The translations under genes were made by a program, and so were the position numbers. Below are positions 37,788 to 59,639 of a DNA stretch of 64,000 bases, piece after piece. Below the pieces are notes generated by a model. That model saw only the letters and a list, made by a program, of their open reading frames with translations, did no database searches and was not told the DNA's origin. Numbering within the stretch: the first letter of the stretch is position 1; every line of letters starts with the position of its first letter. Origin of the DNA: Macrostomum lignano (taxonomy: Eukaryota); assembly GCA_002269645.1 (NCBI GenBank), contig NIVC01000646.1, forward strand, positions 186,001-250,000, read 5' to 3'.

Positions 37788-38900
37788 GGCAAGGGAGAGT
37801 GCAACTTCTGCAAAATTTGAGACGCAAAAGCTAATACAGCTCTGAGAAAATTCGGTCTAATGTAGGATAACTTCGGTAACAAATGTAGGATATTTTAATC
37901 CCATGAAAGCCAATTATAGCGACCATAGAGCGACGAAAGAATGTGTACTCCAAGCTTTTCATGCGAATTTTATTACCATAGTTGGGCTGGGCTCGAACCC
38001 AATGGGTTAAAGCACATCCTTACAATTACATAGAAAACCTTATGTGCCTATATTAGCTTTCCATGATAATTAAGCTGAAAACACAGACGACTGACAGTTG
38101 TGTGCTTATTCAGGTCAATTTTTTCAATTTCATTCTTAAATTCAATTGCTGATAAGTCAAACTATAGCTAGAGGTTGTATAGGATTGTTTGTTGGAATTA
38201 CAGAAATGGGACTGGCATCCCAATTTGCCAGGATTCCGGAATTTTAGGAACAGGATTGAACCACTGTCATACCTCTAACTGCAAATAACACTTGAACTTC
38301 ATATTCAAAACCTTATACAAATTAATATTTATAAAACAAACTATAGGATCTTAGCAACTATCAGACTATGATTTCTAATTTTAAATGAACATTATATCCT
38401 TATAATTCTATTTGAAAAATTCTAATAAAATAAACATTTAAGTCTATTTTTCAACAGTTCAAAATTAGCAAAATACATATAGATGTATAATCATTAAACT
38501 TCCCTAGGCTTTGGTATATGCCAGCAATGTTTCATCATAATCTAATTTACTAGTTTGTATATTTAATCTATAAGTCTGTAAATATCAAACAAAAATTTAG
38601 ATTACTAACCTATCAGATAATCCTTATATCTTAGAATACAAGCCTAATTAGTAGGTCGAATTATACTTTTAACTTTTTATTATACATATTAGCTTAAAAT
38701 AAATACCTTACTAAATGAAACGACAAACTAATTTTGATTAATAAATCAAATACATAACATAATGTATACATTTATATGCTCACTCTAATGGGTCAACACT
38801 TTACCCCATACATTATACCATTTTTATTAATTTTCAACAACTTTGCAAGTCATATGTACTAAACATATTAGGGATGCTTTATAATGCAAATTGAGATTGA

Positions 38901-39290
38901 GGGGGCTGTAGCCCAGCGGTAGCGCAGCTGCTCTGGTGTGCCAGCAACCTAGGCTTGATTCCAAGTGCAGTCACATTAATTTGGGGCTGAATTAGAATCT
39001 CGGCTTAGCTTTTCTCATGCAATTAACAGTCTTGAGAGCCAACCCCCAAGGCGCAGTGAAGTGTACATGCCTAACGATAATATAAAGTTAGGGCCCCTGT
39101 ACACTCCTGTGAGTGTGTGCCTGCGTACATATCCACGCGCTTGTATGCCTGCTCAGGGGAGTCAGCGGAATGGGCAGTAATGCCTCTTGCCAGTTGTGTG
39201 CCTATGTTGCTTAAAGTGCGCCAGGGTGCAAACAACCCCCTGCCTCTAATAATAAAATAATGGGGACTAGATTGGTAGGCTTTTGGTATT
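38901..39290 (+). mobile_element. tRNA-derived SINE flanked by a 53-bp direct repeat
   Basis: tRNA-like head GGGGCTGTAGCCCAGCGG with degenerate B-box GGCTTGATTCC; body resembles 59700-59920; direct repeats at 38842-38894 and 39367-39419 (1 mismatch). Confidence 0.7.
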
Positions 39291-42200
39291 AGAGGTTACT
39301 AACCTCAATATATTAAAACTGATATTGTTTGTATGTGTGTATGTTCAATAACTTTTCACTAGACTATTTGCAAGTCATATGTACTAAACATATTAGGGAT
39401 GCTTTGTAATGCAAATTGATAGATAACATACAAACCTTAGAGATTTAGTATATTTAGAAAGTACAATATTTAAAATACAATAAGTATTTTTACTTACTTT
39501 TAAGTAAACAAGTACTTTTAAGTGACTTAAATAGACTTACAATAAGTAAGTACATATTTTAAGTACACAAGAACTTTTTGACTTTACTCAATACTTGAAC
39601 ATTAGGAAATATAATTAAAAATTCTTTAAGATCAAATATTTGAGTATTCATCAAGTTTTCAATTTAATTGAATATGAATTTAAATATTTATTCTAATATA
39701 TGTAAAAAACTGTATATAAATGCATATGCTAAAAATTTCTTTTAATATATATATTTAAAACTATAAACTATTTATATTTATCTGAAAATTTTAACAAAAG
39801 TAGCAATGGTATATAAATATATAAAAAACTATAGCCTTTTTCCTAATAAATAATAAATAATAAATAATAAATAAATAAATTGCTATTTTTGTATGTTTTA
39901 CTACTTTATTGCTAGCTATTATTTTTATTAGACCAGTGGTATAGCCAAAAAAAGAGGTCTAATGGGCCCCTTGAAATTACCCCTCCTTAATTCTCAAGAA
40001 AAAATCCCCCCAAGCCAAAATTTTCTGCTTATGAAAACATCCCTTTATCTAGATGCTTATTGAGCCCATGAAATAAATTCCTAACTATTCCATTGCATTA
40101 GATACAATAGGAGATGAAAATGTAATATAATTCTAGTTTCTCGCATCAAATTATTTTAAGAATTATTTTTTATTTGATTTTTTTTAAGAATTTTTTTAAG
40201 AATTATTTTTTTAACTGATTTGGCAGCCAACCAAGGAAGTTGCAAAAATGCCCATCCAAAAAAACACCTAAGTAGTAGTACTAAGTAGCTGATGAGGCAT
40301 TTTGGCTTAAAAGACAATCATAGTTACTTTTGCCATTTACCCAAAGTTGCGTTAATTTTGCTTTAGGATTTTTTTACATGTAAGCTGCATTTTTTTACCA
40401 AAAACTACATTGCATTTTTGTTAAACTAAGTTGCATGGCCAACCAAATTTTGGAGGTTGTGTATGTATGCACTTTACTATAAAGTTTTAGCTTATTTTCT
40501 GACTATTTTCAAAGTGAACTAAAAGATAGCAGAGTTTTAAACTAAAAATGCTTATGAAATGTATAAATATTGATCTATTATTTTAACTTTTGATCTAATC
40601 CAAATTTTACTTAAGTTTTTAATGTTACTGCATATTAGTGCTTTAGCTGTATATAAATCAAAATGTAAGAATGTAGTCTTAAAAAATAAAAAAATGAAAT
40701 TAAAAATTATATTGTAGCTTTGCATAATGTGTACTCCAAAATTATGCTGAAATATATTCCCACACATGTGACACCTTCCTGAGTATGGATTCATGGCCAT
40801 CAAAAAATTGAAACTAAGGTTGACAATTTTTCTTTTTTATTCATTAAATTATTTTTCATTTGAAATGAGACAGGCATCAATAATAGCTTTAATACTTTTA
40901 AATTTTACTCATTTTAGGTTTGCCTTTCTTAGAAAAAGCTTATTCAAATTTGCGCGAAATATTGTTTGTTTGAATGTTGTGGTTTGCAAAAATATTTCTG
41001 TAATTATTATTTTGTTTAAACTGTAACGAATTTTGGGTATAAATAGACGTGCTGAGCAGACTTGATGAAGCAACTGTTTGCTGCCTCTTGGTTTTTGATA
41101 AGCAAATTTAGTTCATTCTAAATATTGAAATTGCTTAAAGACTTAATCATTTCTTAGAGTATAAGAACCCCAATTGGGAGTATCAGAAACCGCTACTAGC
41201 AAGAAACCGCCTCAGGGCAGTAAATTGTAAATTCGCCTCAGGGCAGGAGAACCGCTTCATAGCGAGAGAAGATCGCCTCAGGGCATAAAGGGAGCATAAG
41301 CTGTGACCCTCTGATCCAGGGAACGCCCAGGACTGAGAGAATAATATTTTTAGGGGAAGTATAGGAATAGAATAGACAGTGCTATTAGACCGCTCAGGCC
41401 AGAAAATACAATAGAAGTACATACGCTACCAATAGAAGTACATACGCTACCAATAGAAGTACATGCACTACTAGTAGAAAGACAATTAATAACCAGTATA
41501 ATTGTTAAGGAGAAATAACTTTATTACAACTTTGGTGGCATTTAGTGGTATTCTAGGTGCACAGGAATCCCCCCTGTAACAACTGTGGTGGCAGCTAATA
41601 TGGCTAGCAAAAGAATAATTAAGAGCCCTGGGACAGCTTTTGGTGGCATAACGGTGGAATTCTCAGAGAGCCAAAAGGCCTGTAACAACTTGGTAACAGC
41701 AGTGGGATATTATTAAGAAGGAAGCAAAACCTCTAGTACAACTTAGTGACAGCAGTGAAATCATTTGTAGGGACAGAAGTTAACCCCTAGTAAAGAAATA
41801 AAATAATTATGACATAAAACTACTAAAAATAATGAAATTAGGTCACAAAGACCTAATGCTCAAAAAACTTAGAACAATTTAGAACTCAAAAAACAACTGT
41901 CTATGTTCAAAAAGAGTGATAGAATTAAAGCAAACAACTTTGAAATTTCAGTTTTATGGTTCAGTTTAACTTGTGCAATTTAGCTTAGGTCTATTTAAAT
42001 TGATTCTGTTGCATTTATATGTGCAACCCTTTGACTGACATTGACTATATAACTTACTTTTTGACCAAAAAATGTGACTTACTTTAATTAATTTTATTTT
42101 AAATTAATTTATTAATTTTCATTTAATTTTTTTATATTAAACTTCTATATGCTTAAAATCTTTTTTACAGTTTTTTTTTACAATTTTTAATGTAGAAAAA

Positions 42201-42419
42201 ACTGATTTTAACTTTGTGTTCTATATGCAAAACTACATGTAAAGAGAGAAAATTTTAATAAGAAATTAAGAAATAAAAAATTAAAGAAATTAAATAAGAA
42301 AGTTAGAACATTAGTTAGAGGATTAGATAAATGAGAATGCTACTAACATAGAGTAGATATGCTACCAACAGTGGTCTTAGCAAGTAGGTCATTGATTTTT
42401 TGCACCATTCTATTTTTTG

Positions 42420-44450
42420 CACCTAGCTTAAAGTCACGTGGCATGCATAACCTGCATAACTTGCAGGCGCGCTGTTTTTTTTTACTGGCTGCTGCTCTAG
42501 CAAATACATATACATGGAAATGGGTATAATACCTCTGTTGAAGGGGCTTATACACTTGTAATTTATTAAGCTTAGAGATGTTCCAAAAATTCAATTTCAA
42601 TTTTCCAAAATTTGAAATTTTTTAGAGCGAATTTCAATTTAGAAAAAAATTTAGAAGTGAAAATTTTGGTAGTGTCTAAAAAGTCACTAAAAATAAACTA
42701 CTTTCTACTTTCTACTACTTATACATATATTACTTTTTACTTTTTGTAAAAAAGTGAGTGTTAATCATACTAAACTTTGTTTTTCTGAATTATGATTTCG
42801 GGAAATTTCAATTTTGATTTTGGAAAGTTAGCGAATTCTGATTTTGACGAAGCTGCAGATCTTTTGGAACATCTCTAATAATCTTAAAGCGTGGTAAAAT
42901 AGTTTGACTCTTTTCTAAAGCGCGCGTCCGTGGGTTTTTAACATTTATTCCAATAGGGAAAATGCAAACTGCATTGATGATTGATGCAACTACAACTACC
43001 TGACAGCAAAATTTAGCATACATGTATCTCCTATACTGCTTTCAGAAATTAATAATTTCAGCAGACAAGGATTACAAATAAAATATTAGTAGCATTTTAG
43101 TTTGAACTATTTGATTAAAATAAAAAAATTAGAACAAAATGTGAGGAACTGCAAAAAATAGCAAGAAGTCAGACAAGACCTACTGCTAAATTAACAATAA
43201 AACATAATTAATCTGTTTTATTAATGAAATTTGATTTTAACAGCCTATGCAGACTAAATAACAGACTTTAACAGACTAAATAATTTAAAATTTGAAGATT
43301 GAAAAGTGTTAGACATTAATATATTAATTCCATTTCAATTTAAGTAGTGCTAAATAAAATTTCAGCATTTAAACCATAGATTGCATTTGGTCTTGATCTG
43401 GGCAGAGGCAAAGAGTTCTATAAGTAGCAACCTAGAGTGGAAACGAGTTTTTCAGTTTTACCTCATAAGGCCAGACTAGCATAGACAAAGTCAGACAGAG
43501 CCATAGACATTCAGTGCTGGCTTTTATCTTCACAATTGGCATGGCCTCATGAAGTAAAACTCGCTTCTGCTCTAGATTGCTAATTATAGAACTCCTTGGC
43601 AGCTGCTACTTAGCATTAGCAATGCTTACACCATTTTACCTCCTTTTCTGAACAATTTTTTCTTGCATTTTACTGGCTCCATTGTCCCTTCATAATGTAC
43701 TATGGATTAAAGAAACTGTTTTTTTTTCCAATCGGAGTTACTTAGCTCTAATTTTGCACCAATCAGTTGTGAAAAATTTGCACCATACAGTGGCGAAAAA
43801 TTTGTGCCATTGCTCTAAAATTTGCACATTCATGCCTCATTTCTGCCAGGCGCAAATTTGCATTTCACTGGGACCACTGGCTACCAAAATATACCCTATT
43901 AGAATAAATGTTGAAAATCTGTAGACACATGTTTTAGAATAGAGTCAAATTATTTTACCACACTTTAGCATCATTAGAAATGTTTAAAAGAGTATTTTCT
44001 GTTGAAATTAAAACTTAATAACTTTCTAAAATCAAAATTGAAATTTTCCAAAATTAAAATTAGAAAAATAAAGTTATAATACAAACAAAACTCACTTTTT
44101 TACTTTTGATTTATTGCTTATACAAAACAAAACAAATGTATATGTAGCAGAAATTAGTTTATTTTTAGTCATTTTAGACACTTACAAATTTTTGACTTGA
44201 AAATTTTTAAAAAATTGTAATTCACTCATAAAAATGTCAAATTTAGGAAAATCAAAATAAAAATCTTATAATATTTTTAAGTATTATAAATGACAAGTGT
44301 ATAAGCCCTTTTTACAGATATTAGGCCCCTTCCATATATATTTGTTTGCTAGAGCAATAGCCGTTAAGAAGGAACAGGGCACGCACATAGGCGCGCAGCT
44401 TGTTTACACTGCACTTTAGAAAAATTTTAAAAGTGCACCAGACACCATCT
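42420..44450. mobile_element. Foldback-like element with long diverged inverted arms
   Basis: ~42430-42960 aligns as reverse complement to ~43895-44420; a nested inverted pair lies at ~43405-43478 and ~43541-43610; no ORF. Confidence 0.6.
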
Positions 44451-46682
44451 GCAGTTTTACAACTTTTTCCTTTAGGGCCAATATAAGGGATTTCTAATGC
44501 TTAGAATAATATTCAGAAAAATACTCAAAATAATACTAAAATAAATATTACAACTTATACCAAGATTAATTCTTAGACTAATATTTAAACAAAAACTTAG
44601 ATAATTACTTAGACAAATTCTAAGTTAGAAAACTAAAGCCCTTGCCTTAGTAACAACTTGGTAATAGCTTTGTAAGACATTTACAGAGATAAAAACAAAC
44701 CTTTTATTACACTTTTAATGATAGGTAAAGAATCATTTATTAAGATAGAAGAAACTCTACATCAACTTTGATGGTATTAATAAGATATAATCATTAGAGG
44801 TAAAAAAACCCTATGACAACTTTGGTGGCAACAATGGGATTATTATTAAAGACAGAAGTTTACCCCTTTTACACTAGGCCCATACATGTTTTCTATAATT
44901 TAAGACCATTTAATTTAGTTTAAGATTAGTATAAACAGAGATAGAGAACTTAAAAAAATAAAAATCATATACTTTCATTCTATTCTAATATATGATCTTA
45001 ACTTTAAAGCTATAACCACACTCCAGATCAAGTAGTATATGCCTGAAAATTTGGGCGTGCATTGGCCTTGCACGCCAAAATTGGGCATGCACAGTTGGCG
45101 TGCATTATTGCTGAGAAAAAAGTATGCGTACACACCTGGCATGTACTTTATAGAATAATGCGTAAGAGTTATTGTAAAGTAGAAAAAAGATGAAAAAAGT
45201 TCATTTTAGGTGCAAATTTCAAGCTTTCCAGTTTTTTCCAGCTTGTAAAAGAGTATTTAAACAAATCTTTGCGGGTATAAACTTTCCCAACTTGCAACAA
45301 ACTTGCCCAAAAAGCCTTTAAAACAACAAAAATTATTTAATAATAAGGCTCTATTATGAAATTTAAAAAAGGTATTTTATTGTCACAATGTAAAAAGGTC
45401 ATTTATTGTTGCAAAACCGACGTGTTTTTGAGAATAGGCGTGCACTAATTTTTTTGGCATGCATTTGTAATTATTCTGAATATTCAATTTTTGTTCGGGC
45501 GTGCACCCAGCATGATCTGGACTATGGAGCTATAAGTATAACTCTATATGAAAAAAAAATTATTAGGCCTATGCAAATATATTCAATTTAATTAAAGCTG
45601 AAAAAATCTAAAAAATGATATTAAAGTAAACTTAATAAGCATTAATAAATCTTTTAACTAAAAATATTTAGTTAAAAATTCTTATTTTAATAAATTATGT
45701 TACATTCTTTAATATATTTTTGAGTTAAAAAATATCTTTGACAAAAATGTTTATAACTTTTCATTACAAAACAAAAATAATAGGTAAATCATTTTGTAAT
45801 CATGTTATTATCTTCTTTGATATTTGATAAAAATCTCTAAAATTATAAATTATAAACTTTCAAAATCTCACTGAAGTCTCTATAAAAAGCATAAGATTTT
45901 TGCTATTTGAATTTTATAAGCAGCTTTTTTGGTTTTTCAAAGCAGTTTTCATTTGTAATAAAACATGTAAAAATACATTTTATAGACCCTTGTTCTTTCT
46001 TTAATGACAATGTTATTATAGTGTTTAGTGGCTTTGCTTTTAAATGCAACATTTTTTTACATATAACAAGTGCAATATGCAACATATTCCATCCTGACTA
46101 TATTAGTGATACTAGTAATGGCAATGCTGCAATATCTAGTCTAGTCTAGGATTCTAAAACTAAAGTGTCTTAAAATCTAATATTGACCTAACGATATTAC
46201 GATTTAGTAAGAAATATTAATATTTAATATGTTAACTTAATTAATTATTAATCAAGCAAATTCACGCTTAGAAATAAATAATCCGAGATAGGGCCAGGGC
46301 CCCAGTTCATTACCTTACGTACCGTTGCGTCGATGACAGAACCTGTCCTTCGCAAACAAAATGGACAAACCAGAACAATAAAAATTAAATAGGAAAAGGT
46401 AAAACAAAAACGACTATTATTATTGATGATTATATTATTTTTTGACATTATTTGTCTAAATTGAAAAATATTTTCACAAGACGAAAATGACTCTTTTCTG
46501 TATTTTTTATTTACTTTTTGAGGTGCTCTGTTACAAAAAACGCGATTAATGGCTAATGTGCATGGGTCAAATCGAACATTAGTTGAATGTTTTTCACAGC
46601 GTCGTTCTTGATCAGACCAAGAAAAAATTATTTAATTGCTTCACTTTTTATTCTTTACTTTACTACTAACCAACTTCGGTAT

Positions 46683-46734
46683 ACTCTGACCAAGGACCAC
46701 TAGAACGTAACTTCTAGTGGTCCTTGACTCTGAC
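46683..46734. mobile_element. 36-bp perfect hairpin flanked by an 8-bp target-site duplication
   Basis: ACTCTGAC (46683-46690) + CAAGGACCACTAGAA-CGTAAC-TTCTAGTGGTCCTTG + ACTCTGAC (46727-46734). Confidence 0.75.
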
Positions 46735-47225
46735 ATGTATACAGTCGAAGTTGTAACATGTAAAGCTACATGTAATGACACGTAGCTTTATTTTCATCCG
46801 ACTCAAAATTTATTCTTATCGTTGTAAAGTGTACATAAATGTTAAGTGTAAAGGTTAAGGTAGTCTGTGAGCATCCGACAACCGACAACCCTTCTAAGGA
46901 TAAAACGCATCCAAAATTTTTACACAAATCAAGCAATAAAGCGGAAATACCTTTATGAATATTAAAAAAAATATTTCTTTGAAAATATTGTCATTGTGCC
47001 GCGAAATGAATTCAAAATGTTCGTATCTCGATCCGCTACAGTATTTCTCACATCCGTGGCTATATTGTGCGGCGCTATTGAAATTGTACTCTGTTTTTCT
47101 CACGTACATGTACACAGTGTTAGCGTGCGCGTGCCAACCCTGCCAACGCATCTGTATGGTTCCTAACCCTCCGAGCTACATGTAGTTACTCGTACATGTA
47201 CATACACAATCTCCCCGAATAGGGT

Positions 47226-47395
47226 GGGGGTTGTAGCCTAGTGGTTTGAGCGTCGGACTCACGACATGAAGGTCGGGGGGTTGGATTCCCGATTTCCCTG
47301 GAACAATTTGTGTTCTTAAGCAAGACAAACTCTCTGAATAATTGCTTCAGTTCAGTACCTAGCGGTAAAATGGTTACCAGCATTAGCTAGGGTGT
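47226..47395 (+). mobile_element. tRNA-derived SINE of a second family
   Basis: A-box TAGCCTAGTGG and degenerate B-box GGTTGGATTCC, followed by TTGTGTTCTTAAGCAAGACA resembling conserved SINE core sequences. Confidence 0.6.
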
Positions 47396-47922
47396 TCCAT
47401 AGACTGAACAGCGCCGTACGCAGCCTTCAGATGCGCCGCGCAATAGCTGCGGCTGAGCTGTCGGTTGCATATCTGGCCCAATCGGGGTAGGTGTAATCAA
47501 TTATTATTATTGTGTACATATTCAAGTTACAGTGTACTCGTACATCTTGAAGCATTTTCTCGAATCTCGAAATGTCCCGAAAATGTGAATTGCAATTCCA
47601 ACTGTACCTTTAGTGTTGCCGCTATCCAAAAACTTGGTTAATTTGGAAGTTCAGCAGGTGAGAATCGAAATTCGCTTCAATCGATCATGGGTTTTCAATC
47701 GAAAAAAATGCAACTAAACGATCAATAAAGAGAAATTTCTGTTAGTGGTTTAAATTTCAAGACTTTATTTTACTTTTGAATGCTGAAAGCAGGAGCTAAA
47801 CTGTTTGCATTCGGTTCCTCGCAGGACGAGTCCAGCAGCGTGTTAACCGGCCATGGCTTAGCATTCGAACTTCAAATGAAGCGTCTCTGCAAGTGAGGAT
47901 CAGTCCGTATTTCGGCTGATGC

Positions 47923-48953
47923 TTACACCTCGCACTGAAATTCGCAGTACTTCCGGACCTCCCAGCAGGCCCGGGAGCGTCTCCAATCACTTGCTGAACA
48001 GCCGAGGATCTTCCGGCAGGCTTTGAATTCGCTTACACAGCAGTTCTGGCAAGCTGCCGGGCCAGCCCTCTCCAGACCCCCTCTCTGGCTGCACGGGGTC
48101 ACCTCAACGCCATGCCCCTCGACGGTGGCGATGGCAACAAGCAGCGACAAGAGCGCGCAGTTGAAACTGAAAATTCAGTTTAGCAGAGATACATTTACAA
48201 CAATGAGATTTTCGACTCTGTACAGAGGTTATTGGGGCACCCAGCGCTCTGCTGTCTCAGATTCTTGGTCATTTGGGGCACCCAGCGCTCTGCTGTCTCA
48301 GATTCTTGGTCATTTGGGGCACCACTTCCAGGGCTCTGCGGTCTCAGATTCTTGGTCATTTGGGGCACCCAGCGCTCTGCGGTCTCAGATTCTTGGTCAT
48401 TTGGGGCACCCAGCGCTCTGCTGTCTCAGATTCTTGGTCATTTGGGGCACCCAGCGCTCTGCTGTCTCAGATTCTTGGTCATTTGGGGCACCACTTCCAG
48501 GGCTCTGCGGTCTCAGATTCTTGGTCATTTGGGGCACCACTTCCAGGGCTCTGCGGTCTCAGATTCTTGGTCATTTGGGGCACCACTTCCAGGGCTCTGC
48601 GGTCTCAGATTCATAGTCATTTGTTGCGTCAGTCCCAGGGCTCTGCGGTCTCAGATTCTTAGTCATTTGTTGCGTCAGTCCCAGGGCTCTGCGGTCTCAG
48701 ATTCTTAGTCATTTGTTGCGTCAGTCCCAGGGCTCTGCGGTCTCAGATTCTTAGTCATTTGTTGCGTCAGTCCCAGGGCTCTGCGGTCTCATATTCTTAG
48801 CCATTTGTTGCGTCAGTCCCAGGGCTCTGCGGTCTCATATTCTAGTTGTTTTTTTCGACCGCTAAGTCTTTGGCATTAAGTTTCGTTGCTTATTAAGCTA
48901 AGAGATTATTGAACTTACACAAACTTAGAGGCTCCAGACGAGAATAAAGCCAT
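47923..48953 (-). CDS. Small secreted cysteine-rich peptide precursor (92 aa, 2 exons)
   Basis: Exons 48953-48919 (ATG..GT|GTAAGT, phase 2) and 48166-47923 (TTTTCAG|T). Protein MALFSSGASKFVFNCALLSLLVAIATVEGHGVEVTPC...CEFQCEV: hydrophobic signal-like N-terminus and 9 Cys in the predicted mature part. Confidence 0.75.
48231..48842. repeat. Intronic minisatellite of 41-47-bp related units
   Basis: Units share GCTCTGC(T/G)GTCTCAGATTCTT; the variant type changes progressively along the array. Confidence 0.93.
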
Positions 48954-49169
48954 GGATGCGAAGTATCTGCTGATAAGAATCAGGTCAAGCTATCAGTTTA
49001 TGGATCGTAGCAGGCGTCCTACTCCGCGTTCCAGCTGAATTAAAAATCATGCATCTCGTGTCCGAATTGAGATATTATGTGCAAGAAAACCGAACCCTCA
49101 TTGGCTGGCTTAAAACCAATTCGGGCTGGATTTTGGAATAGAAGTCCAGTACTATCCAGGACACTGTGG

Positions 49170-49562
49170 ACCACCAGTGTCTATGGGACACCAGTGTCTA
49201 TGGGACACCAGTGTCTATGGGACACCAGTGTCTATGGGACACCAGTGTCTATGGGACACCAGTGTCTATGGGACACCAGTGTCTATGGGACACCAGTGTC
49301 TATGGGACACCAGTGTCTATGGGATACCAGTGTCTATGGGACACCAGTGTCTATGGGATACCAGTGTCTATGGGACACCAGTGTCTATGGGATACCAGTT
49401 TCTATGGGACACCAGTGTCTATGGGACACCAGTGTCTATGGGACACCAGTGTCTATGGGACACCAGTGTCTATGGGATACCAGTTTCTATGGGACACCAG
49501 TGTCTATGGGACACCAGTGTTTGGGACACCAGTATCTATGGGACACAAATGTCTATGGGACA
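49170..49562. repeat. 17-bp minisatellite (CCAGTGTCTATGGGACA)n
   Basis: Visible tandem repeat. Confidence 0.95.
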
Positions 49563-49976
49563 GTCTACAGAATGTCCAATGTCTAGGCAGTGTGATGATA
49601 GAGTTATTTAGCACAGATGTCTAGGAAACTCGGGTGTTTTAGCCATATGCAAAACTGTTGCTCAATTTAATTATTCTTGTGAATCAAAAATGTTTTGACC
49701 GTTATGGTATCCCGCCACCAAATATAAGATAAAAGTGTAGAAAATTGTGTTTTTCAAACTGATTTGGCAATCCAAATACAAGTTTTTATGGAGTAAAACA
49801 GTCTTCAGAATAACAGTGCTCATTCAGTCCTCTAGGCCAGAAGCTTTTATCAATAATTCTCACTACAGCTCGTACAGCTGCCTGTCTCAGTTTAGAGACA
49901 GGCTGGCAAAGTCACGCAAAGACACCACTTGGATTACACCGAATCAATAATTAAATAAGAGCGTCAAGCTTTCCTA

Positions 49977-52008
49977 TCAATAGCGACAAACGCGTTTGCA
50001 CAGTTTAAGTTTGCGCTTGACCATTCGTCTGCGCGCCCGCATGTAGGCCAACTTGCGCCTGAGGAACCAACGGCCAGCGTGCCACTTCAGGTGACGCCGG
50101 CTGCTCTTCTTCTCGTTGGTCTTCTTCCTGGCTTTGAGCTTTTTCAGCATCGATTGAATTCGCTTCTCGGCCCGTTTGATTCGTGAGAGCAGCTTGCGAA
50201 TCTTGTCGCAGCCTGGGGCGGAGCGATTCGGGCGAATGCGTTTCGTGCAGTGGGACAGGAACAGACTCCCTTGGGTCAGGAACTGAGACAGGAACAGACT
50301 CCCTTGGGTCAGGAACTGAGACAGAAACAGCCTACTTATGGGAGGTACAGGAACTGAGACAGTGTACTGAGACTCATGAGACAGGAACAGTTTACTCATG
50401 AGACAGGAACAGTTTACTCATGAGACAGGAACAGTTTACTCATGAGACAGGAACAGTTTACTCATGAGACAGGAACAGTTTACTCATGAGACAGGAACAG
50501 TTTACTCATGAGACAGGAACAGTTTACTCATGAGACAGGAACTGAGACAGGAACATAGTAGGAAAACTGACCCCGACGGCACTTGAAGCAGAAACGGAAA
50601 CGTCGCCTCAACTTGTTGAGCTTCCGCTTCAGCCGGAGTTTCCTATGCCGGAAGTGCTTCCTTCGCCAGTAGCCGTAGCTGTGCTTGGCTAGTCGGCCGT
50701 AGCGGACAATGAGCTGCACAAGTTTGGCCTGGAGTAAAACAACCCGACGGCAGGCCCGGAACACGCAGGTGTACCGGACGCGCAGGTAGGGCCGCTCCTT
50801 TGAGCTGCACGGCTTGCCGAAAATTTTCTTGCTCGCCTCAAGCCGGCAGCGCCGCTTGCCCTGGCAGAGACGGCGCGCTTCGTTCCGGCTGTTTTTAGCG
50901 GAGCAGCGCGCGATGCGACTGTCCAACTTTCGATGGCCGTGCTTGAACCTAAGCTTCGGACAGATGCGAGCGGAGTAGCGACCGTAGAAGGCGTCCAGGA
51001 CGCGGATTTTATAGCCGTTGCGGCAGCCGAGACGCAGGGTGCGGCCATGACAGGCGGTGCGAACGCGGACCCGATGCCGTCGGTGGTGACCATGGTGGCG
51101 ATGGGGCCGGTGCGGGCGGCGATCGCGCTGACGATGGGGCCGGTGCGGGCGGCGATCGTGCTGACGATGGGGCCGATGCGGGCGGCGATCGTGCTGACGA
51201 TGGGGCCGGTGCGGGCGGCGATCGTGCTGACGATGGGGCCGGTGCGGGCGGCGATGGCTGTGTTGACGCAACTCGAGGCGGTTGTGCGAGCGTTGACGGT
51301 CGTTGCCCTTGTCGTCGGCTGCGGAAAAACGTTGAAAAGCTAGGAAGGTATCTCAAAGTGACTTGCCAATGTACTTCGTTGGCTTCTGATTGTTAGCTCA
51401 ATCAGAATTGCAGGTAAAAGGCATATGAAACTATTGACGCTACAAACTCACCAGAGGCAAGAGGGCTATTGCAGCTAGCAAGCAGCTACAAACTCACAGA
51501 GGCAACAGCTATTGCAGCTAGCAAGCAGCTACAAACTCACCAGAGGCAACAGCTATTGCAGCTAGCAAACAGCTACAAACTCACCAGAGGCAACAGCTAT
51601 TGCAGCTAGCAAACAGCTACAAACTCACCAGAGGCAACAGCTATTGCAGCTAGCAAACAGCTACAAACTCACCAGAGGCAACAGCTATTGCAGCTAGCAA
51701 ACAGCTACAAACTCACCAGAGGCAACAGCTATTGCAGCTAGCAAGCAGCACAGCACACACAGAGGCAACAGCTATTGCAGCTAGCAAACAGCTACAAACT
51801 CACCAGAGGCAACAGCTATTGCAGCTAGCAAACAGCTACAAACTCACCAGAGGCAACAGCTATTGCAGCTAGCAAGCAGCTACAAACTCACCAGAGGCAA
51901 CAGCTATTGCAGCTAGCAAGCAGCTACAAACTCACCAGAGGCAACAGCTATTGCAGCTAGCAAGCAGCACAGCACACACAGAGGCAGTACTGCTCGAAAT
52001 CCGGCCAT
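49977..52008 (-). CDS. Secreted, highly cationic protein with His/Arg repeats and a SUEL (galactose/rhamnose-binding) lectin domain (351 aa, 3 exons)
   Basis: Exons 52008-51936 (signal peptide MAGFRAVLPLCVLCCLLAAIAVAS, GTGAGT donor), 51318-50572 and 50212-49977; both junctions phase 1; total 1056 nt. Eight-Cys SUEL pattern with YGR, FGKPC and YLRVRYTC. The second donor (GTCAGT) is weaker. Confidence 0.8.
50240..50550. repeat. Intronic repeats: 33-bp duplication and 22-bp (CTCATGAGACAGGAACAGTTTA)n
   Basis: Visible tandem units filling predicted intron 2 of the lectin gene. Confidence 0.9.
51440..51965 (-). repeat. 44-bp tandem repeat derived from the 3' end of the signal-peptide exon plus its splice donor
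   Basis: Minus-strand unit CTG(C/T)TTGCTAGCTGCAATAGCTGTTGCCTCTG|GTGAGTTTGTAG; 11 GTGAG donors counted, including the genuine one at 51935. Confidence 0.92.
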
Positions 52009-52504
52009 TACTGGACTTGAATTTGCAATGTTACGCCTAAGGTCAGAAAGAAATGAAAATCAAACAAAGCCTCGCTCTAGCGCCAATATTTTTATCCTCA
52101 AATTTGGCTCGGAAGGAAAAAACAGGTGCCCTCTCAGTGACGGATATCCAGCTCGAATGCTTCTCTCACTCGCAGTTGAATTGCTGCAAAAGACTGATGC
52201 CAAGGTGAGGCTTGTTGAGTTGCTTGCTGTGCTGTAGCTGTGTTGCAGATATATCATGGCTAGGAAAGCTTGACATTTGGACACAAAAATTGAATGCAAT
52301 TCGAATGCCAGGCAGCTGCAATGGGCTCCGCGTTTCACCTGCTATAGCAACAAGCAGTTCCAGCGGCATGACTGTTGTAAATTATTTTCGTAGCTCATAT
52401 TTTGGAATTGCCAACATTCTAGCTGTAGTTTTGTAATATTTCACTGCGAATGCATAGGGCAATGATTTATAGGGCTTAATGATTTTTGTCAACGGATATG
52501 GCTT

Positions 52505-52612
52505 AGGGTAGGGGTTAGGGTTATTGCATGTTAAAGTTAGGGCTAGGGCTAGGGCTAGTGCTAGGGTTAGGGATAAGGCTAATGTTAGGGCTAGGGCTAG
52601 GGCTAAGGGTTG
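52505..52612 (+). repeat. Degenerate interstitial telomere-like (TTAGGG/CTAGGG) tract
   Basis: GGGTTAGGG and CTAGGG hexamers visible. Confidence 0.7.
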
Positions 52613-52954
52613 AGGAGAATTTACCAGCAAAATTGTCATATGAAAGAAATATCACGGCAATAGAGGAATTTTTATAGACTTTCTATAGACTTTCCATGCT
52701 TGTTTTTTGAATAGAAAATCAATTTATTTTGTGTTGTCCCACATTTCCGTGATGGCCATCAGTTTAAGTTAGCAAAATGTCTGTCAGCTGTCAGAGCTGA
52801 CGCCAAGGCCAGGGTGTTGATTGGTCTGACAAAAAAGTCAATCAAGTAACTGTCACTCAAATATCCTCCTAATAGCAAGCTCTGTCAGCTCTCATGTCCG
52901 ACAGATTGGATTTTTGTCTTCGATTTCTATTCAGTGCATATTTGTGTTGTGTTT

Positions 52955-53785
52955 ATTGCTCATAGTCTGATGTACAGTGTCTATTGCTCATAGTCTGATG
53001 TACAGTGTCTATTGCTCATAGTCTGATGTACAGTGTCTATTGCTCATAGTCTGATGTACAGTGTCTATTGCTCATAGTCTGATGTACAGTGTCTATTGCT
53101 CATAGTCTGATGTACAGTGTCTATTGCTCATAGTCTGATGTACAGTGTCTATTGCTCATAGTCTGATGTACAGTGTCTATTGCTCATAGTCTGATGTACA
53201 GTGTCTATTGCTCATAGTCTGATGTACAGTGTCTATTGCTCATAGTCTGATGTACAGTGTCTATTGCTCATAGTCTGATGTACAGTGTCTATTGCTCATA
53301 GTCTGATGTACAGTGTCTATTGCTCATAGTCTGATGTACAGTGTCTATTGCTCATAGTCTGATGTACAGTGTCTATTGCTCATAGTCTGATGTACAGTGT
53401 CTATTGCTCATAGTCTGATGTACAGTGCCTATTGCTCACAGTCTGATGTACAGTGTCTATTGCTCATAGTCTGGTGTACAGTGTCTATTGCTCATAGTCT
53501 GATGTACAGTGCCTATTGCTCACAGTCTGATGTACAGTGTCTATTGCTCATAGTCTGGTGTACAGTGTCTATTGCTCATAGTCTGATGTACAGTGCCTAT
53601 TGCTCACAGTCTGATGTACAGTGTCTATTGCTCACAGTCTGATGTACAGTTTCTATTTCTCGCAGTCTGATGTACAGTGTCTATTGCTCATAGTCTGGTG
53701 TACAGTGCCTATTGCTCACAGTCTGATGTACAGTTTCTATTTCTCGCAGTCTGATGTACAGTGTCTATTTATAACAGTCTGATGT
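52955..53785. repeat. 28-bp minisatellite (CTCATAGTCTGATGTACAGTGTCTATTG)n
   Basis: Visible period of 28; homogeneous left part and diverged right part. Confidence 0.96.
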
Positions 53786-54234
53786 CACAGGAATGCTTCT
53801 GATAGTACAACCGATGGCAGATGGTATTCATACCAAACTAAAATGAATAAAGCACAACAGCTTCATAGAAGTGCGGGCTACCAGGGTGCGCCAAGTACAG
53901 CACTATGCAGTCTGCAGCCTATTATTGATGTTGAATGCATTATTAGTTAGTCATCCCCCAGCTAGCGGGGTTAACCCCCCCCCGCATTATCGGGTATAAC
54001 AAATTTTTTGGCGGCAATATTTTTCATTTATTGCGTTTCTCTTCTTACAAACGTGCAGCCGACTGCAGTCTGCCTTCCCGTCTCCCCCTACTGGCTCCTG
54101 TCTCCTTCCAGCTGCCTCGCGCCCCATCACGATCGGAATTCCCTAGTGACGTGTTAGTTCTTTCTTAACATGTCTCTCTGTGCAGCTTGCCGCGAAATCC
54201 TTGGAAGTAAAATGTGTCAGCGAAACTCCAAGTC

Positions 54235-54530
54235 GATCTCTATGCTTCGATTAAATTGTGTCTGTACAGCAATCCAGATCTCTATGCTTCGATTAAATTG
54301 TGTCTGTACAGCAATCCAGATCTCTATGCTTCGATTAACTTGTGTCTGTACAGCAATCCAGATCTCTATGCTTCGATTAAATTGTGTCTGTACAGCAATC
54401 CAGATCTCTATGCTTCGATTAACTTGTGTCTGTACAACAATCCAGATCTCTATGCTTCGATTAAATTGTGCCTGTACAACAATCCAGATCTCTATGCTTC
54501 GATTAAATTGTGTCTGTACAGCAATCCAGA
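54235..54530. repeat. 42-bp minisatellite (~7 copies)
   Basis: GATCTCTATGCTTCGATTAAATTGTGTCTGTACAGCAATCCA repeated. Confidence 0.95.
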
Positions 54531-54798
54531 GAAATGTTTTTCATCGGCAGCAAACTTAGTTAAAATGCTGCTGATAATTTCTCCCCATCCGCAGTCTCCC
54601 CCCCTTTTCTCCCCGGCCCTCAGCTGAAGTGGCGACTGCATCAAGCCAGGCCCCCGCTATTGGCCCGCCAGCTTTCCCCGGCAGAGACAAAAACTCAATT
54701 TCAGCATAGAAGATATATTCTAATGCTCAACTCACTAACGGGCAAGCAGACTGTATTCAATATGCTATCTGTTTTATAGCCTGATAATCCAGGCCGCC

Positions 54799-56055
54799 AT
54801 GGACCCGGACAGCACCGGTTCCGACGCCTACAGGGTGTGGCTTGCCCGCCTCAACCTGCTCAACGTGCCCCTGGTGGCCCTGGGCATTGCTGGTAATTTC
54901 GTCAACTGTCTGTCCTTCTCGCAGCGAGCGGTGTGGCGGCACAGCCTCACGGCTGCTCTGTTCGCTCTGTCGCTAAACGACCTGCTGCTGCTGGGCACCT
55001 TCACCACCGTGGCCAACTCCGGGCTGCAGATCGGCAGCGCAGTCGGCTGCTTTGTTACGCAGTTCCTCTACGGCAGCCTGTCGATGCTCAGCCCCTGGCT
55101 ACTCGTCGGCATCACCATGGATCGACTGTTGCACGTTTCCGACTCGCCGCTGGCCAGGCGATTCCGTCCCGGTTGCGTCGTGGCCTCCCTGGCCGCCGTG
55201 AGCGCCGGGCTGAACCTGCACGTGGCCTACAGCATTGTGTACCTGCCCGACCCCATCCACAACGGCACGATGAACTGCATGCCGAGGCGTGGCGCCGAGA
55301 TATTCGCTCTGGCCGACGCTGTGGCCTCAGCCCTGCTGCCCGGAGCTCTACTCGTGCTGCTCAACGCCGCAGTGTACCACGTGGCCAGGCGGGCCGGCCA
55401 GCTGCGCCCGAACGGCGGCAGCGCCGGAGTCGGCGGACAGCAGGCCGGACAGAGCCAGACAGTTCGGCCGCGCTACCAGCTCAGCCGGATGCTGCTGAGC
55501 TTCTGCCTGGCTTACCTGCTGCTCAACCTGCCCAACTATGCCATCATCTGCGCCGGCCTGCTGCTCCAGCGAAGCCGCGTCAGGATCAACGGCGAGCACT
55601 TCAACCTGGTGCGCAGCGCCTGCCAGACTCTCTACTTGGTGCACTTCTCCACCAACGGGCTCATCTACGCCTACTGCAACCGCAAGTACCGGGTGGCTCT
55701 CGCCCTGCTAGGCCGCAAAGCGCGCCAGCGACTTGGCCGCCTGCTCCGATTGTTCCGCCGACTGTTCAACCGCCTGCGGCAGCGCGCCAGACCGCGATGG
55801 CCGATTAACGGTGACCAACGGTTCGTCACCTTCGTGCCGTTGGAGGCAGCCGCGGCAGCCGCGCTTGCTGTTGGCCAGGAAGCCGAAAACGAAGCTTCAA
55901 ACGAGCATGTCGGCAACGCCTGCCGCTGCGGCCGCTGCGAGCACCAGATCAAACTGCCGGTCGGCGCTGCCGCCGATGCTGGCGCCGATGCTGGCGCTGA
56001 ACCTCGCGGCGACCTCGCCAGATGCCAATTGATGAAGCCGGCCAGTTTTGGCTGA
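54799..56055 (+). CDS. Single-exon class A (rhodopsin-like) GPCR, probably of the peptide-receptor type (418 aa)
   Basis: Seven hydrophobic segments; TM1 GN, TM2 LSLND, TM3 Cys and DRL, TM6 NLP, TM7 NGLIY followed by basic helix 8. Confidence 0.88.
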
Positions 56056-56109
56056 CAAATTATTGGCTGATTGATCTGACTGTTGATTGATCCAAGTAAA
56101 AAATAATCT

Positions 56110-56502
56110 TGGCGCCAATCGCTAGCAATGACGGGTTCCATTGGCGCCAATCGCTAGCAATGACGGGTTCCATTGGCGCCAATCTCTAGCAATGACGGGT
56201 TCCATTGGCACCACCCTCCAGCAATGACGGGTTCCATTGGCGCCACTCTCTAGCAATGACGGGTTCCATTGGCGCCAATCTCTAGCAATGACGGGTTCCA
56301 TTGGCGCCACTCTCCAGCAATGACGGGTTCCATTGGCGCCACTCTCCAGCAATGACGGGTTCCATTGGCGCCACTCTCTAGCAATGACGGGTTCCATTGG
56401 CGCCACTCTCAAGCAATGACGGGTTCCATTGGCGCCACTCTCTAGCAATGACGGGTTCCATTGGCGCCACTCTCTAGCAATGACGTGTTCCATTGGCGCC
56501 AT
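56110..56502. repeat. 32-bp minisatellite (~12 copies)
   Basis: GCAATGACGGGTTCCATTGGCGCCACTCTCTA repeated. Confidence 0.95.
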
Positions 56503-57183
56503 CAAGCAAGCACAGTATCCAATGCATAATCCGTTTTAAATCCATTTTTTATCTTTCAAAAGCCAATATAAAGAGGTATATGGGCCCCCGGAAAGCGCTA
56601 AAGTCACACAGATCACCCCGGCCATTCTTATCTTAATCTTCTTTTAGTCACTCTTTGTTTCACTTGCTTTAATTTACCAAAGCTTTTTTGTACCATAAAT
56701 TTCTCCTGTTTTTTGTTGTTGTTATATAAAGTTGCACCAGTAGAAGCAATAAGGGTCCTGTCACTCTCACCACCCCTTACTCTGTTATTTCACCACCCAG
56801 ACAGTCAGTTATAGCTCTCATGGTAACTGTGAATATACAAAATATAAGAAAATAGAAACAATAAATTGTATAGACAACAATAATAGCCTGTAAAATTTGT
56901 CTGTCCGTCTGCCTGTCAATTAACAAGCCGAAGGCACATTCGCACAGCACCGTTAAGCCAAGAGCCATGCTAACATATGCTAAATATTCAATTCTAAATG
57001 TCGCGGCAGTTAAGTCTGCACTGCAGTAGTAGTGTGTCACTAACTCATACGAGCCGTAGGAATTACAGTTAGCAAATTTCAAACTCTGAATTTTAACTAA
57101 CTGAATAATTTGAGGTTTGATAGTACTCTTTAAACTCTTAAACTTGCACTCGCAATAAATAACAAGCATGCAAAACATTGAAG

Positions 57184-57570
57184 ATTCATTCCCCACTTGG
57201 GTCTGGCCATTGACTACAGAAACGTATTCATTCCCCACTTGGGCCAGGCCATAGACTGCAGAAACGTATTCATTCCCCACATGGGCCAGGCCATAGACTA
57301 CAGAAACGTATTCATTCCCAACATGGGCCAGGCCATAGACTACAGAAACGTATTCATTCCCCACTTGGGCCAGGCCATAGACTACAGAAACGTATTCATT
57401 CCCCACTTGGGCCAGGCCATAGACTACAGAAACGTATTCATTCCCCACTTGGGCCAGGCCATAGACTACAGAAACGTATTCATTCCCCACTTGGGCCAGG
57501 CCATAGATTACAGAAACTTATTCATTCCCCCTACTTGGGCCAGTCCATAGACTGCAGAAACTTAATCCCC
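57184..57570. repeat. 42-bp minisatellite (~9 copies)
   Basis: TATTCATTCCCCACTTGGGCCAGGCCATAGACTACAGAAACG repeated. Confidence 0.94.
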
Positions 57571-58014
57571 ACTGAGGAATAAACACACTTTTCCCGCATG
57601 TTTCATTTATCATGACCGCAAACGACTGAGGACTCGTTTATTGGGCGAGAGCAGAACAGGAACGAAAACAGAAATGAATGTTATAATATTCAATTCAACA
57701 TTTTATATTAATTTTTATGTACAACGCACAAAACTAGCTTATAAAAATAGGAAATTCAGAAGCAGAGCAAGTAGCTGAAAACTACAGTAAAAGTGTTATC
57801 GGAGCTCGGCAGTAAAATCAAGGAGGGAAGATCGCCGTAGATAGGACAAAGGGAATATTCGCAAAAAGTACAGGCCAATCCCTTCACCAAATTGCAGTGC
57901 GTGCCACTCAGTATCCATAATCAGTATAATCACAAGCCGTGAAAGCAAAGTGCTTGCTTCCAGAATTCGATATCAGCTTTTGAGAAATATTGTCATGCGT
58001 GTAAGTTGCGTGGT

Positions 58015-58968
58015 AGAGAGACAGGTGAGAGAGACAGGTGAGGGGAGAGATACAGGTGAGAGGGAGAGAGACAGGTGAGAGGGAGAGAGACAGGTGAGAG
58101 GGAGAGAGACAGGTGAGAGGGAGAGAGACAGGTGAGAGGGAGAGAGACAGGTGAGAGGGAGAGAGACAGGTGAGAGGGAGAGAGACAGGTGAGAGAGACA
58201 GGTGAGAGAGACAGGTGAGAGAGACAGGTGAGAGAGACAGGTGAGGGGAGAGAGACAGGTGAGAGAGACAGGTGAGAGAGACAGGTGAGAGAGACAGGTG
58301 AGGGGAGAGAGACAGGTGAGAGAGACAGGTGAGGGGAGAGAGACAGGTGAGAGGGAGAGAGACAGGTGAGAGGGAGAGAGACAGGTGAGAGAGACAGGTG
58401 AGAGAGACAGGTGAGAGAGACAGGTGAGAGAGACAGGTGAGAGAGACAGGTGAGAGAGACAGGTGAGAGAGACAGGTGAGAGAGACAGGTGAGAGAGACA
58501 GGTGAGAGAGACAGGTGAGAGAGACAGGTGAGAGAGACAGGTGAGAGAGACAGGTGAGAGAGACAGGTGAGAGAGACAGGTGAGAGAGACAGGTGAGAGA
58601 GACAGGTGAGAGAGACAGGTGAGAGAGACAGGTGAGAGAGACAGGTGAGAGAGACAGGTGAGAGAGACAGGTGAGAGAGACAGGTGAGAGAGACAGGTGA
58701 GAGAGACAGGTGAGAGAGACAGGTGAGAGAGACAGGTGAGAGAGACAGGTGAGAGAGACAGGTGAGAGGGAGAGAGACAGGTGAGAGAGACAGGTGAGAG
58801 AGACAGGTGAGAGAGACAGGTGAGAGAGACAGGTGAGAGAGACAGGTGAGAGGGAGAGAGACAGGTGAGAGAGACAGGTGAGAGGGAGAGAGACAGGTGA
58901 GAGAGACAGGTGAGAGAGACAGGTGAGAGAGACAGGTGAGAGAGACAGGTGAGAGAGACAGGTGAGGA
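58015..58968. repeat. 13-bp purine-rich minisatellite (ACAGGTGAGAGAG)n
   Basis: Visible repeat with GAGG-insertion variants. Confidence 0.96.
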
Positions 58969-58997
58969 GACACGCGCAGGCTGAGACAGCTGAGTGC

Positions 58998-59432
58998 TCA
59001 TCGCTGCTGCACCCCAGCAGCAGACGGTGAATCTGCAGCGCCAGCCACCGGAAGCGAACTTCGGCGACGCGATCCGGAAGTCGCCGCCGCTGCAGCCGCG
59101 GATGCGGCAGCCGCCTGCCGGCGCCAGGCGTCATAAGCGGCGCGCATTTCGCTGGCGGCGGCGCGCATCCGCTGGACGCTCTCCAGGTGCGCCTCCTCGG
59201 CCCTGTTCAGGCGGTCGATGTTGTCGCTGTGGAGCTGGGCTCGGCCGGACTCGGACATGGCGCGGTAGCGCTGCACCGCGGCGCGACACTCCGGCTCCTG
59301 GCCGGCCTCCTGGCGCGCGGTGCGCAGCTCGGCCTGCAGGCGGGCGTCGGCGATGGCGCCGGCTGCAGCGCCAGAGCGCTCTATGAGTCGGATGACGGAG
59401 TCCAGCTTGAAGGAGCGAAAAATCCGGCCTGT
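58998..59432 (-). CDS. Probable terminal coding exon, Ala/Arg/Glu-rich helical protein of unknown function
   Basis: GC-rich coding-like stretch preceded by acceptor CACGTTTCAG(ACAG); reading frame [16 protein letters not shown]...AGVQQR-stop. Upstream exons not identified. Confidence 0.55.
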
Positions 59433-59440
59433 CTGAAACG

Positions 59441-59632
59441 TGGATTGGATGGGCTGGACTGTGGATTGGATAGGCTGGACTGTGGATTGGATGGGCTGGA
59501 CTGTGGATTGGATAGGCTGGACTGTGGATTGGATGGGCTGGACTGTGGATTGGATGAGCTGGACTGTGGATTGGATTGGCTGGACTGTGGATTGGATAGG
59601 CTGGACTGTGAATTGGATGGGCTGGACTGTGA
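59441..59632. repeat. 21-bp minisatellite (TGGATTGGATGGGCTGGACTG), 9 copies
   Basis: Visible repeat immediately upstream of the 59432 acceptor. Confidence 0.95.
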
Positions 59633-59639
59633 ACCTCCA

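Follow-up and report, generated by a model that had tools for sequence, protein, structure and literature searches.

A stretch of 64,000 nucleotides from the flatworm Macrostomum lignano (contig NIVC01000646.1 of assembly GCA_002269645.1, positions 186,001 to 250,000; hereafter the window) contains at positions 48953 to 47923 a locus for which a first-pass annotation had proposed an unrecognised secreted peptide with a symmetric cysteine scaffold. Our analysis indicates that this locus is probably a real, unannotated gene, and that its product would be a secreted, disulfide-stapled helical-hairpin peptide belonging to a fast-diverging family restricted to Macrostomum. The gene lies on the minus strand, and all its coordinates are given for that strand in the numbering of the whole stretch. 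Its proposed parts are as follows.

48953-48919, minus strand: exon 1, coding, predicted; 35 nt with an ATG start and 11 2/3 codons (MALFSSGASKF-V), letters ATGGCTTTATTCTCGTCTGGAGCCTCTAAGTTTGT
48919/48918, minus strand: donor, TGT/GTAAGT, closing exon 1
48918-48167, minus strand: intron of 752 nt, GTAAGT...TTTTCAG
48240-48843, no strand assigned: minisatellite filling the intron; 46-bp unit, 13.6 copies, 93% matches, with 41-bp and 46-bp sub-variants
48167/48166, minus strand: acceptor, ...GAATTTTCAG/T; the first base of exon 2 is 48166
48166-47923, minus strand: exon 2, coding; hydrophobic core of the signal peptide, the entire cysteine-rich mature peptide and the stop
48166-48115, minus strand: remainder of the putative signal peptide (residues 12-29), h-region FVFNCALLSLLVAIA
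48114-47926, minus strand: mature peptide H30-V92 with nine cysteines, as predicted from the cleavage site
47925-47923, minus strand: stop codon TAA
47769-47764, minus strand: AATAAA polyadenylation signal, 154 nt 3' of the stop

Exon 2 is the strong part of this gene model. Its reading frame ranks first of the six by the codon usage of neighbouring genes, and its GC content at third codon positions (GC3 = 0.69) is like that of those genes, both flanks having a GC content of 0.45. This frame is open from the acceptor onwards but not before it, a TGA lying three codons upstream, and has no internal methionine. Because exon 2 lacks a start codon, a 5' exon is required. A scan of the 3.3 kb upstream revealed a single exon that opens with ATG and has a GT[AG]AG donor in the right phase, that at 48953-48919, which is predicted to be the 5' exon as the parsimonious solution. 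Joining the two exons gives an in-frame coding sequence of 279 nt and a precursor of 92 amino acids (MALFSSGASKFVFNCALLSLLVAIATVEGHGVEVTPCSQRGGLERAGPAACQNCCVSEFKACRKILGCSASDWRRSRACWEVRKYCEFQCEV). The exon 1 donor and the TTTCAG acceptor both fit the motifs published for M. lignano, which are GT[G/A]AG for cis-donors and [T/C]TNCAG or CAG for acceptors (PMC8629364). The predicted splice from 48919 to 48166 is the only canonical solution available; an alternative in-frame AG at 48119/48118 was rejected as an acceptor, since it has no pyrimidine tract and its use would delete the signal peptide. At the level of sequence, the initial proposal that splicing crosses a minisatellite-filled intron thus holds, with an in-frame coding sequence, canonical sites and a sole right-phase exon within the scanned region. 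Taken alone, exon 1 stands only weakly beyond chance.

The peptide is not a singleton. An exhaustive phmmer search of 1.84 billion (1.84e9) protein representatives returned a single relative, UniRef100_A0A1I8G1Y5, a 354-residue M. lignano protein (E = 1.8e-5), whose C-terminal 82 residues (273-354) align to the precursor from the leader core through to its C-terminal end. Pairwise BLASTP of the precursor against this protein gave an E-value of 6e-15 with 31/82 identities, and identity between the peptide and the A0A1I8G1Y5 C-terminus is 38-47%. Eight aligned cysteines are present in both, and the mirrored arrangement CX3CX6C...CX6CX3C is kept, as are the leader core LSLL.AIA, the C-x2-CC-x6-C-x5-C block, the loop LGC-x3-DWR and the segment C-W-E-x2-K-Y-C-x-x-Q-C. 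The two proteins have in common the scaffold C-x2-CC-x6-C-x5-C-...-C-x6-C-x3-C, in which the only difference is an arginine in place of a cysteine at position 75, and both stop two residues past the last cysteine. They differ in that A0A1I8G1Y5 has a spacer of x9 after its first cysteine (x13 in the window peptide) and a KR site in its pro-region. The peptide and the A0A1I8G1Y5 C-terminus would therefore constitute an undescribed, fast-diverging family restricted to Macrostomum, with at least two members known so far.

A0A1I8G1Y5 as a whole is a composite. An OATP transporter contributes its last 115 profile positions, and a truncated SUEL domain and then the cysteine-rich peptide with its leader core follow. 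The SUEL match covers residues 212-270 and ends at profile position 60/80, exactly at the junction with the peptide. The protein thus appears to be a mis-fused automatic gene model, and it does not argue for the peptide being a lectin domain. An exact look-up of A0A1I8G1Y5 in the assembly collection returned no contig. Its database name, 'SUEL-type lectin domain-containing protein', conceals the peptide family.

No further members were recovered. Searches with tblastn of the peptide and of A0A1I8G1Y5 against the window found no second peptide copy in the 64 kb, and a scan of the window for further cysteine-dense open reading frames (ORFs) returned only repeats and the zinc knuckles of vasa-like genes. 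Of 33 pattern matches that the conserved motifs produced in a scan of metagenome contigs, none was confirmed. Word-index protein searches with the precursor and with the two-sequence alignment returned nothing, but this method also missed A0A1I8G1Y5 itself and is insensitive for a short cysteine-rich query. There was also no self-match of the peptide in the protein collections, which include the UniProt M. lignano set but evidently not the genes of this assembly, since their best matches to the vasa-like genes were UniRef entries of M. lignano alone. Because the collections include neither these genes nor Macrostomum RNA-seq assemblies, the missing self-match says nothing about expression.

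The precursor has the features of a secreted peptide. Its cysteines lie at residues 15 (in the leader), 37, 51, 54, 55, 62, 68, 79, 86 and 90, and translation of the spliced coding sequence reproduces exactly the originally reported mature spacing of C-x13-C-x2-CC-x6-C-x5-C-x10-C-x6-C-x3-C. The mirrored halves are likewise real (C51-x3-C55-x6-C62 and C79-x6-C86-x3-C90), with C54 sitting inside the x3 of the first. Hydropathy peaks at 2.5 over residues 16-26 within a 15-residue hydrophobic core, which is preceded by K10 and followed by the cleavage-type motifs AIA/T and VEG/H. The n-, h- and c-region features of a leader are thus visible, the n-region resting on the predicted exon 1. By the (-3,-1) rule, cleavage is likely to occur after AIA (A25, giving a mature peptide of 67 amino acids) or after VEG (G29, giving 63). 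The signal-like N-terminus and the predicted product of 63 or 67 residues agree with the proposal of a signal peptide followed by a mature peptide of about 63 residues. The mature peptide is mildly basic, with an isoelectric point of about 8 and a net charge of +2.

We used AlphaFold2 with single-sequence input to predict the fold of a 64-residue form of the window peptide. The model has a mean predicted local distance difference test score (pLDDT) of 74.6 and contains helices at positions 19-38 and 49-62 of the input. Predicted helix 1 corresponds to precursor residues 47-66 and carries C51, C54, C55 and C62, the predicted loop holds C68 and the conserved LGC...DWR, and predicted helix 2 corresponds to residues 77-90 and carries C79, C86 and C90. 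The paralogue, folded independently (pLDDT 68.6), was predicted to form the same two helices, together with a short N-terminal helix bearing its first cysteine. In helix 1, C51 is followed at i+4 and i+11 by C55 and C62, and in helix 2, C79 is followed at i+7 and i+11 by C86 and C90; these spacings would place each cysteine triplet on one helical face, and because the spacing is mirrored, three antiparallel rungs fit. The helical hairpin suggested by the first-pass annotation is therefore what is predicted for the peptide and, independently, for its paralogue. Foldseek comparison of both models with the PDB, and of the window model with BFVD, gave only chance-level neighbours (E>4), among them copper storage proteins, the bc1 hinge protein and phage ORFs.

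We next consider membership of known families. A Pfam search with the peptide gave no matches at E<=10, CHCH and SUEL (PF02140) included, and a phmmer search of PDB sequences also gave none. A PDB profile search placed the RanBP2-type zinc finger of RBM5 at E ~1, which we rejected as an artefact of cysteine composition. Saposin-like, insulin-like, ShK, knottin and other catalogued cysteine-rich families gave no match by Pfam profile, PDB or Foldseek (PDB, BFVD). The earlier statement that no characterised family matches thus stands with respect to Pfam, PDB sequences and Foldseek, and is to be amended in one regard, namely that the peptide has a paralogue within A0A1I8G1Y5.

In its predicted architecture, the peptide is most like small secreted peptides in which two helices are joined by disulfides. 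Plant alpha-hairpinins are small secreted defence peptides of helix-loop-helix form, with two or three inter-helix disulfides. The outer pairs of the window peptide, C51x3C55...C86x3C90, match their CX3C...CX3C register, and its inner loop, C62-x16-C79, is inside their range of 4-20 residues (PMC11591084). However, the window peptide comes from an animal, is unrelated in sequence, has three further cysteines and about twice the length, and has an inner rung of x6 rather than x3. It also fails the motif that defines alpha-hairpinins, CX3C-X4-20-CX3C or CX3CX3C-X4-20-CX3CX3C with X not Cys and no CC doublet (PMC11591084): C54 creates a CC doublet in the first CX3C, the outer pairs are 30 residues apart and the middle rung is x6. 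We therefore rejected membership of this family.

Similar reasoning applies to three animal or mitochondrial groups. The animal Cs-alpha/alpha peptides, such as scorpion kappa-KTx and cone-snail framework XIV types, have 4 cysteines in 20-35 residues; compared by general architecture and not by sequence, they resemble the proposed form of the window peptide in being gland-secreted, disulfide-stapled antiparallel helical hairpins with a CX3C...CX3C register, and searches of PDB sequences and folds with the window peptide found no similarity to them. CHCH twin-CX9C proteins, like the predicted hairpin, pair cysteines across the facing helices of a helix-loop-helix, but they have no signal peptide, their oxidation being carried out by Mia40 in mitochondria. 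The window peptide has a twin CX10C (C51-x10-C62 and C79-x10-C90) where CHCH proteins have a twin CX9C, and it was excluded from this family by that spacing, by its extra internal cysteine and middle rung, by its N-terminal hydrophobic leader and by the absence of a Pfam CHCH match; the bc1 hinge protein appeared as a Foldseek neighbour at E = 9, which is chance level. Aplysia attractin, a water-borne peptide pheromone of about 58 amino acids, has two antiparallel helices and three disulfides formed by six cysteines. It contains a C-x6-C-x5-C stretch as in the window peptide, but the overall cysteine order differs, and PDB sequence and fold searches with the window peptide did not match it. 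In summary, the peptide would work like disulfide-stapled helix-loop-helix peptides and is a member of none of their families, and its only demonstrable membership is in the two-member Macrostomum family.

The comparison with the paralogue also accounts for the odd number of cysteines in the mature peptide. The paralogue has ten cysteines after its leader, the extra one lying in DWRC where the window peptide reads DWRR. The count of the window peptide is odd because Arg75 stands at the position of this cysteine, at the following codon.

47979-47977, minus strand: CGC, Arg75; the paralogue has Cys here, and the codon is one transition from TGC

On the simplest reading, the paralogue would close a small disulfide loop at the turn of the hairpin, between position 75 and the counterpart of C68, which makes C68, in the hairpin loop, probably the unpaired residue of the window peptide. 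C68 could plausibly be a free loop thiol, and a tolerated loss or the first sign of decay is likewise plausible; the comparison at position 75 involves two sequences, which is insufficient to call the ancestral state. The first-pass annotation had suggested that the odd ninth cysteine might allow dimerisation. The count is indeed odd and is traced to Arg75, and dimerisation is possible, although nothing else indicates a dimer.

The upstream neighbour of the peptide gene, on the same strand, is a SUEL-lectin gene, and the features of this gene and of the gap bear on how the peptide gene is to be read.

49977-51271, minus strand: SUEL-lectin gene
51052-50816, minus strand: complete SUEL domain, Pfam SUEL_Lectin 2.9e-15, profile positions 1-80/80
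50399-49977, minus strand: ORF for the unusually basic K/R-rich tail of the lectin gene, with its own stop and no Pfam match
49671, minus strand: ATTAAA of the lectin gene
50372-50542: perfect 22-bp repeat, 7.8 copies, intron-like, between the two ORF blocks of the lectin gene
51099-51255: 33-bp minisatellite in or beside the 5' coding part of the lectin gene
49172-49562: 17-bp minisatellite, 391 nt, between the lectin and peptide genes

The gap between the two genes is about 1 kb, of which the 17-bp minisatellite takes up 391 nt. It also contains 218 nt of unique sequence in which CCAAT and ATAATAT motifs occur and which may act as a promoter. The same-strand order of SUEL and then peptide at the window locus recurs in the fused A0A1I8G1Y5 model. 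Its occurrence at both loci implies that the pair was duplicated together or that the adjacency has been maintained. The published operon criterion for M. lignano is a repeat-adjusted spacing of <1 kb (PMC8629364), and the lectin-peptide pair would qualify if the peptide mRNA were trans-spliced to the spliced leader (SL).

Several observations weigh against a functional secreted hairpin peptide. An exon resembling exon 1 arose by chance in ~8% of random trials on a 328-nt non-repeat stretch and in ~50% of random 1-kb stretches, both of matched composition. Two donor-like GTAAGC sites lie within exon 2 on the minus strand, at 48036, in the CC-V-S codons, and at 47926, overlapping the stop codon, and other isoforms or read-out past the stop may exist. 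Removal of the stop by splicing at 47926 is unlikely, as the paralogue has the same terminal residue and AATAAA follows. The confidence of the AlphaFold models is moderate (pLDDT 75 and 69 from single sequences), a net charge of +2 is not what strongly cationic antimicrobial peptides typically show, the paralogue is known only from a gene model in which it is fused to a lectin, and an odd number of cysteines could also mean a decaying copy. These points lead to three rival explanations.

The fused model raises the possibility that exon 2 is a terminal, or alternative terminal, exon of the SUEL-lectin gene, in which case the hydrophobic stretch would be internal or transmembrane and the cysteine-rich part would be a C-terminal domain of the lectin. 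The sole database model with the peptide domain does join it to a SUEL domain, the two follow one another in the same order and on the same strand at both loci, and the gap between them is ~1 kb with 391 nt of minisatellite. However, the SUEL domain of A0A1I8G1Y5 breaks off at 60/80 at the junction and an OATP tail stands at the N-terminus, which marks the model as a chain of fused neighbours, whereas in the window the SUEL domain is complete (1-80/80) and the gene continues into a basic tail that ends in a stop of its own at 49977, with ATTAAA at 49671. Neither SUEL ORF has a GT[AG]AG, GTAA or GTGA donor in the right phase, and the 15-residue hydrophobic core has the length of a signal peptide and is too short for a transmembrane segment. 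We consider a lectin exon highly improbable. It is also rather improbable that the window copy, though a genuine family member, is a silent or decaying duplicate in which Arg75 marks relaxed constraint. The odd cysteine number does arise from a single-base difference to the paralogue, and no annotated protein matches the peptide in any collection searched. M. lignano has a hidden polyploidy and many duplicated genes. Against such a silent copy, the frame, the start, both splice sites, the stop and the polyadenylation signal are intact, all the other cysteines and the loop motif are conserved, and the codon bias is retained; moreover, annotation routinely misses short two-exon peptide genes.

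The remaining alternative, which we judge unlikely, keeps the gene and changes its 5' end: an unexamined upstream exon might be used, or the mRNA might be trans-spliced to the SL downstream of the lectin in an operon. The repeat-adjusted spacing is within the operon criterion of <1 kb (PMC8629364), the trans-splice motif is matched by the TTTCAG acceptor of exon 2, exon 1 is weak in statistical terms, and some 20 nt before the ATG stands a pyrimidine-rich ...TCTTATCAG. The spliced leader of M. lignano itself ends in ATG (PMC8629364), and we considered whether this ATG could serve as the start where exon 2 begins. An SL joined at 48166, however, reads a different frame that stops after ~20 codons, and its out-of-frame ATG thus cannot replace exon 1. 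Exon 2 has no in-frame methionine and needs a cis exon, and the 48953 exon, the sole canonical candidate, supplies a fitting n-region ending in lysine. If the SL were instead added upstream of the ATG, the proposed coding sequence would be the same. Thus, the two-exon gene for a secreted hairpin peptide remains our preferred reading.

For this gene, the following course can be proposed. A classical signal peptide, with its n-region from exon 1 and its h-region from exon 2, would route the precursor into the secretory pathway, and cleavage after A25 or G29 would free a peptide of 63-67 residues. The mature peptide is predicted to fold as an antiparallel helix-loop-helix, in which three inter-helix disulfide rungs, which we infer to be C51-C90, C55-C86 and C62-C79, would hold the hairpin together. 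A bond between C37 and C54 probably fastens the N-terminal arm, and C68, left without a partner, would be either a free thiol or part of an intermolecular bridge. The resulting compact, protease-resistant hairpin would show the loop LGC...DWR and the aromatic and basic surfaces of its helices to an extracellular target. We infer that the most likely role is that of an extracellular binding peptide released from gland or epidermal cells.

Within this general role, more specific functions can be suggested only tentatively. Mucosal or epidermal defence alongside the neighbouring lectin is a possibility, and a reproduction-related secretion is a slightly less probable one. Reproduction-related genes in Macrostomum reportedly evolve fast and often lack homologues. 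The text supplements of the M. lignano prostate and seminal-fluid screen (Mlig-pro1-76) contained no matching sequence strings or lectin terms. A signalling peptide or pheromone is unlikely, and a predatory or defensive toxin more unlikely still; nothing in the analysis points to a venom apparatus or to ion-channel activity. Literature searches on A0A1I8G1Y5 and on SUEL proteins, secreted cysteine-rich proteins and antimicrobial or toxin peptides of Macrostomum yielded nothing relevant. A bolder proposal, to which we give little weight, is that the peptide and its paralogue represent a new Macrostomum-restricted family of three-rung hairpins, each member coupled to a SUEL-lectin gene in a conserved two-gene cassette, maybe an SL-resolved operon. 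The lectin would provide glycan targeting and the hairpin would be the effector in defence or post-mating manipulation, with the free loop thiol created by the change from Cys75 to Arg switching the peptide from a monomer to a covalent dimer or lectin adduct.

The rest of the window is rich in tandem repeats and contains several other genes. Three tandem DEAD-box helicase genes resembling vasa/DDX4 occupy 18362-35783 on the minus strand, each with two large ORF blocks.

21332-19617 and 19378-18362, minus strand: first vasa-like copy
30215-28116 and 25776-24625, minus strand: second vasa-like copy
35783-33795 and 33583-32624, minus strand: third vasa-like copy

Their N-terminal arrays of GGRGGF motifs and CCHC zinc knuckles are encoded by 75-108-bp tandem repeats of varying copy number, the middle copy having 7 knuckles. 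A0A1I8JLJ9 of M. lignano matches the third copy at 97% identity in the first exon (34634-33798), for which the best match outside Macrostomum stands at ~50%, and at 78% in the second exon. These differing identities suggest either a chimeric model in the database or gene conversion. A Ran-like small GTPase has exons at 36919-37493 on the minus strand, and a single-exon ORF for a rhodopsin-family G-protein-coupled receptor (418 amino acids, 7tm_1 1.3e-7) lies at 54799-56055 on the plus strand; an exact look-up of this ORF in the assembly collection gave no record.

Large satellites are present at both ends of the window. That at 1-12152 repeats a 25-bp unit 480 times and is strongly asymmetric between the strands (GC skew -0.3, AT skew +0.44), and that at 61150-64000 has a 21-bp unit in 136 copies, runs off the end of the window and creates a spurious 918-residue 'DAKLDSI' ORF. 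Between them, nearly 10 kb at ~38000-47700 have a GC content of 26-32% and no notable ORF, with GC-rich, gene-dense flanks; this AT-rich stretch, which may be a spacer or the remains of an old transposon, ends just downstream of the polyadenylation signal of the peptide gene. From 48844 to 64000, a different, unrelated minisatellite occupies nearly every intron or intergenic gap near the peptide gene, the unit lengths being 17, 22, 33, 44, 28, 42, 32, 42, 13 and 21 bp. Each unit of the 44-bp repeat at 51439-51968 has a consensus GTGAGT donor, and a short (TAGGGC)n run is found at 52538-52605. An Rfam search of the whole window gave no match, and a scan for bacterial promoters and terminators, irrelevant for eukaryotic DNA, showed nothing.

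Because lineage-specific cysteine-rich secreted peptides are numerous in invertebrates, the finding is a modest one and a routine gain in annotation. It illustrates that short two-exon peptide genes with repeat-filled introns go missing in the annotation of the M. lignano genome. If expressed, the gene would add a taxonomically restricted secreted peptide family to a flatworm model that is tractable by RNA interference, transgenesis and in situ hybridisation. The recurring adjacency of lectin and peptide offers a testable hypothesis of co-deployment. The peptide itself would be a three-rung variant of the stapled helical hairpin, a design that arose independently in plants, where it serves defence, in venoms and in mitochondria, and that is attractive as a stable peptide framework.

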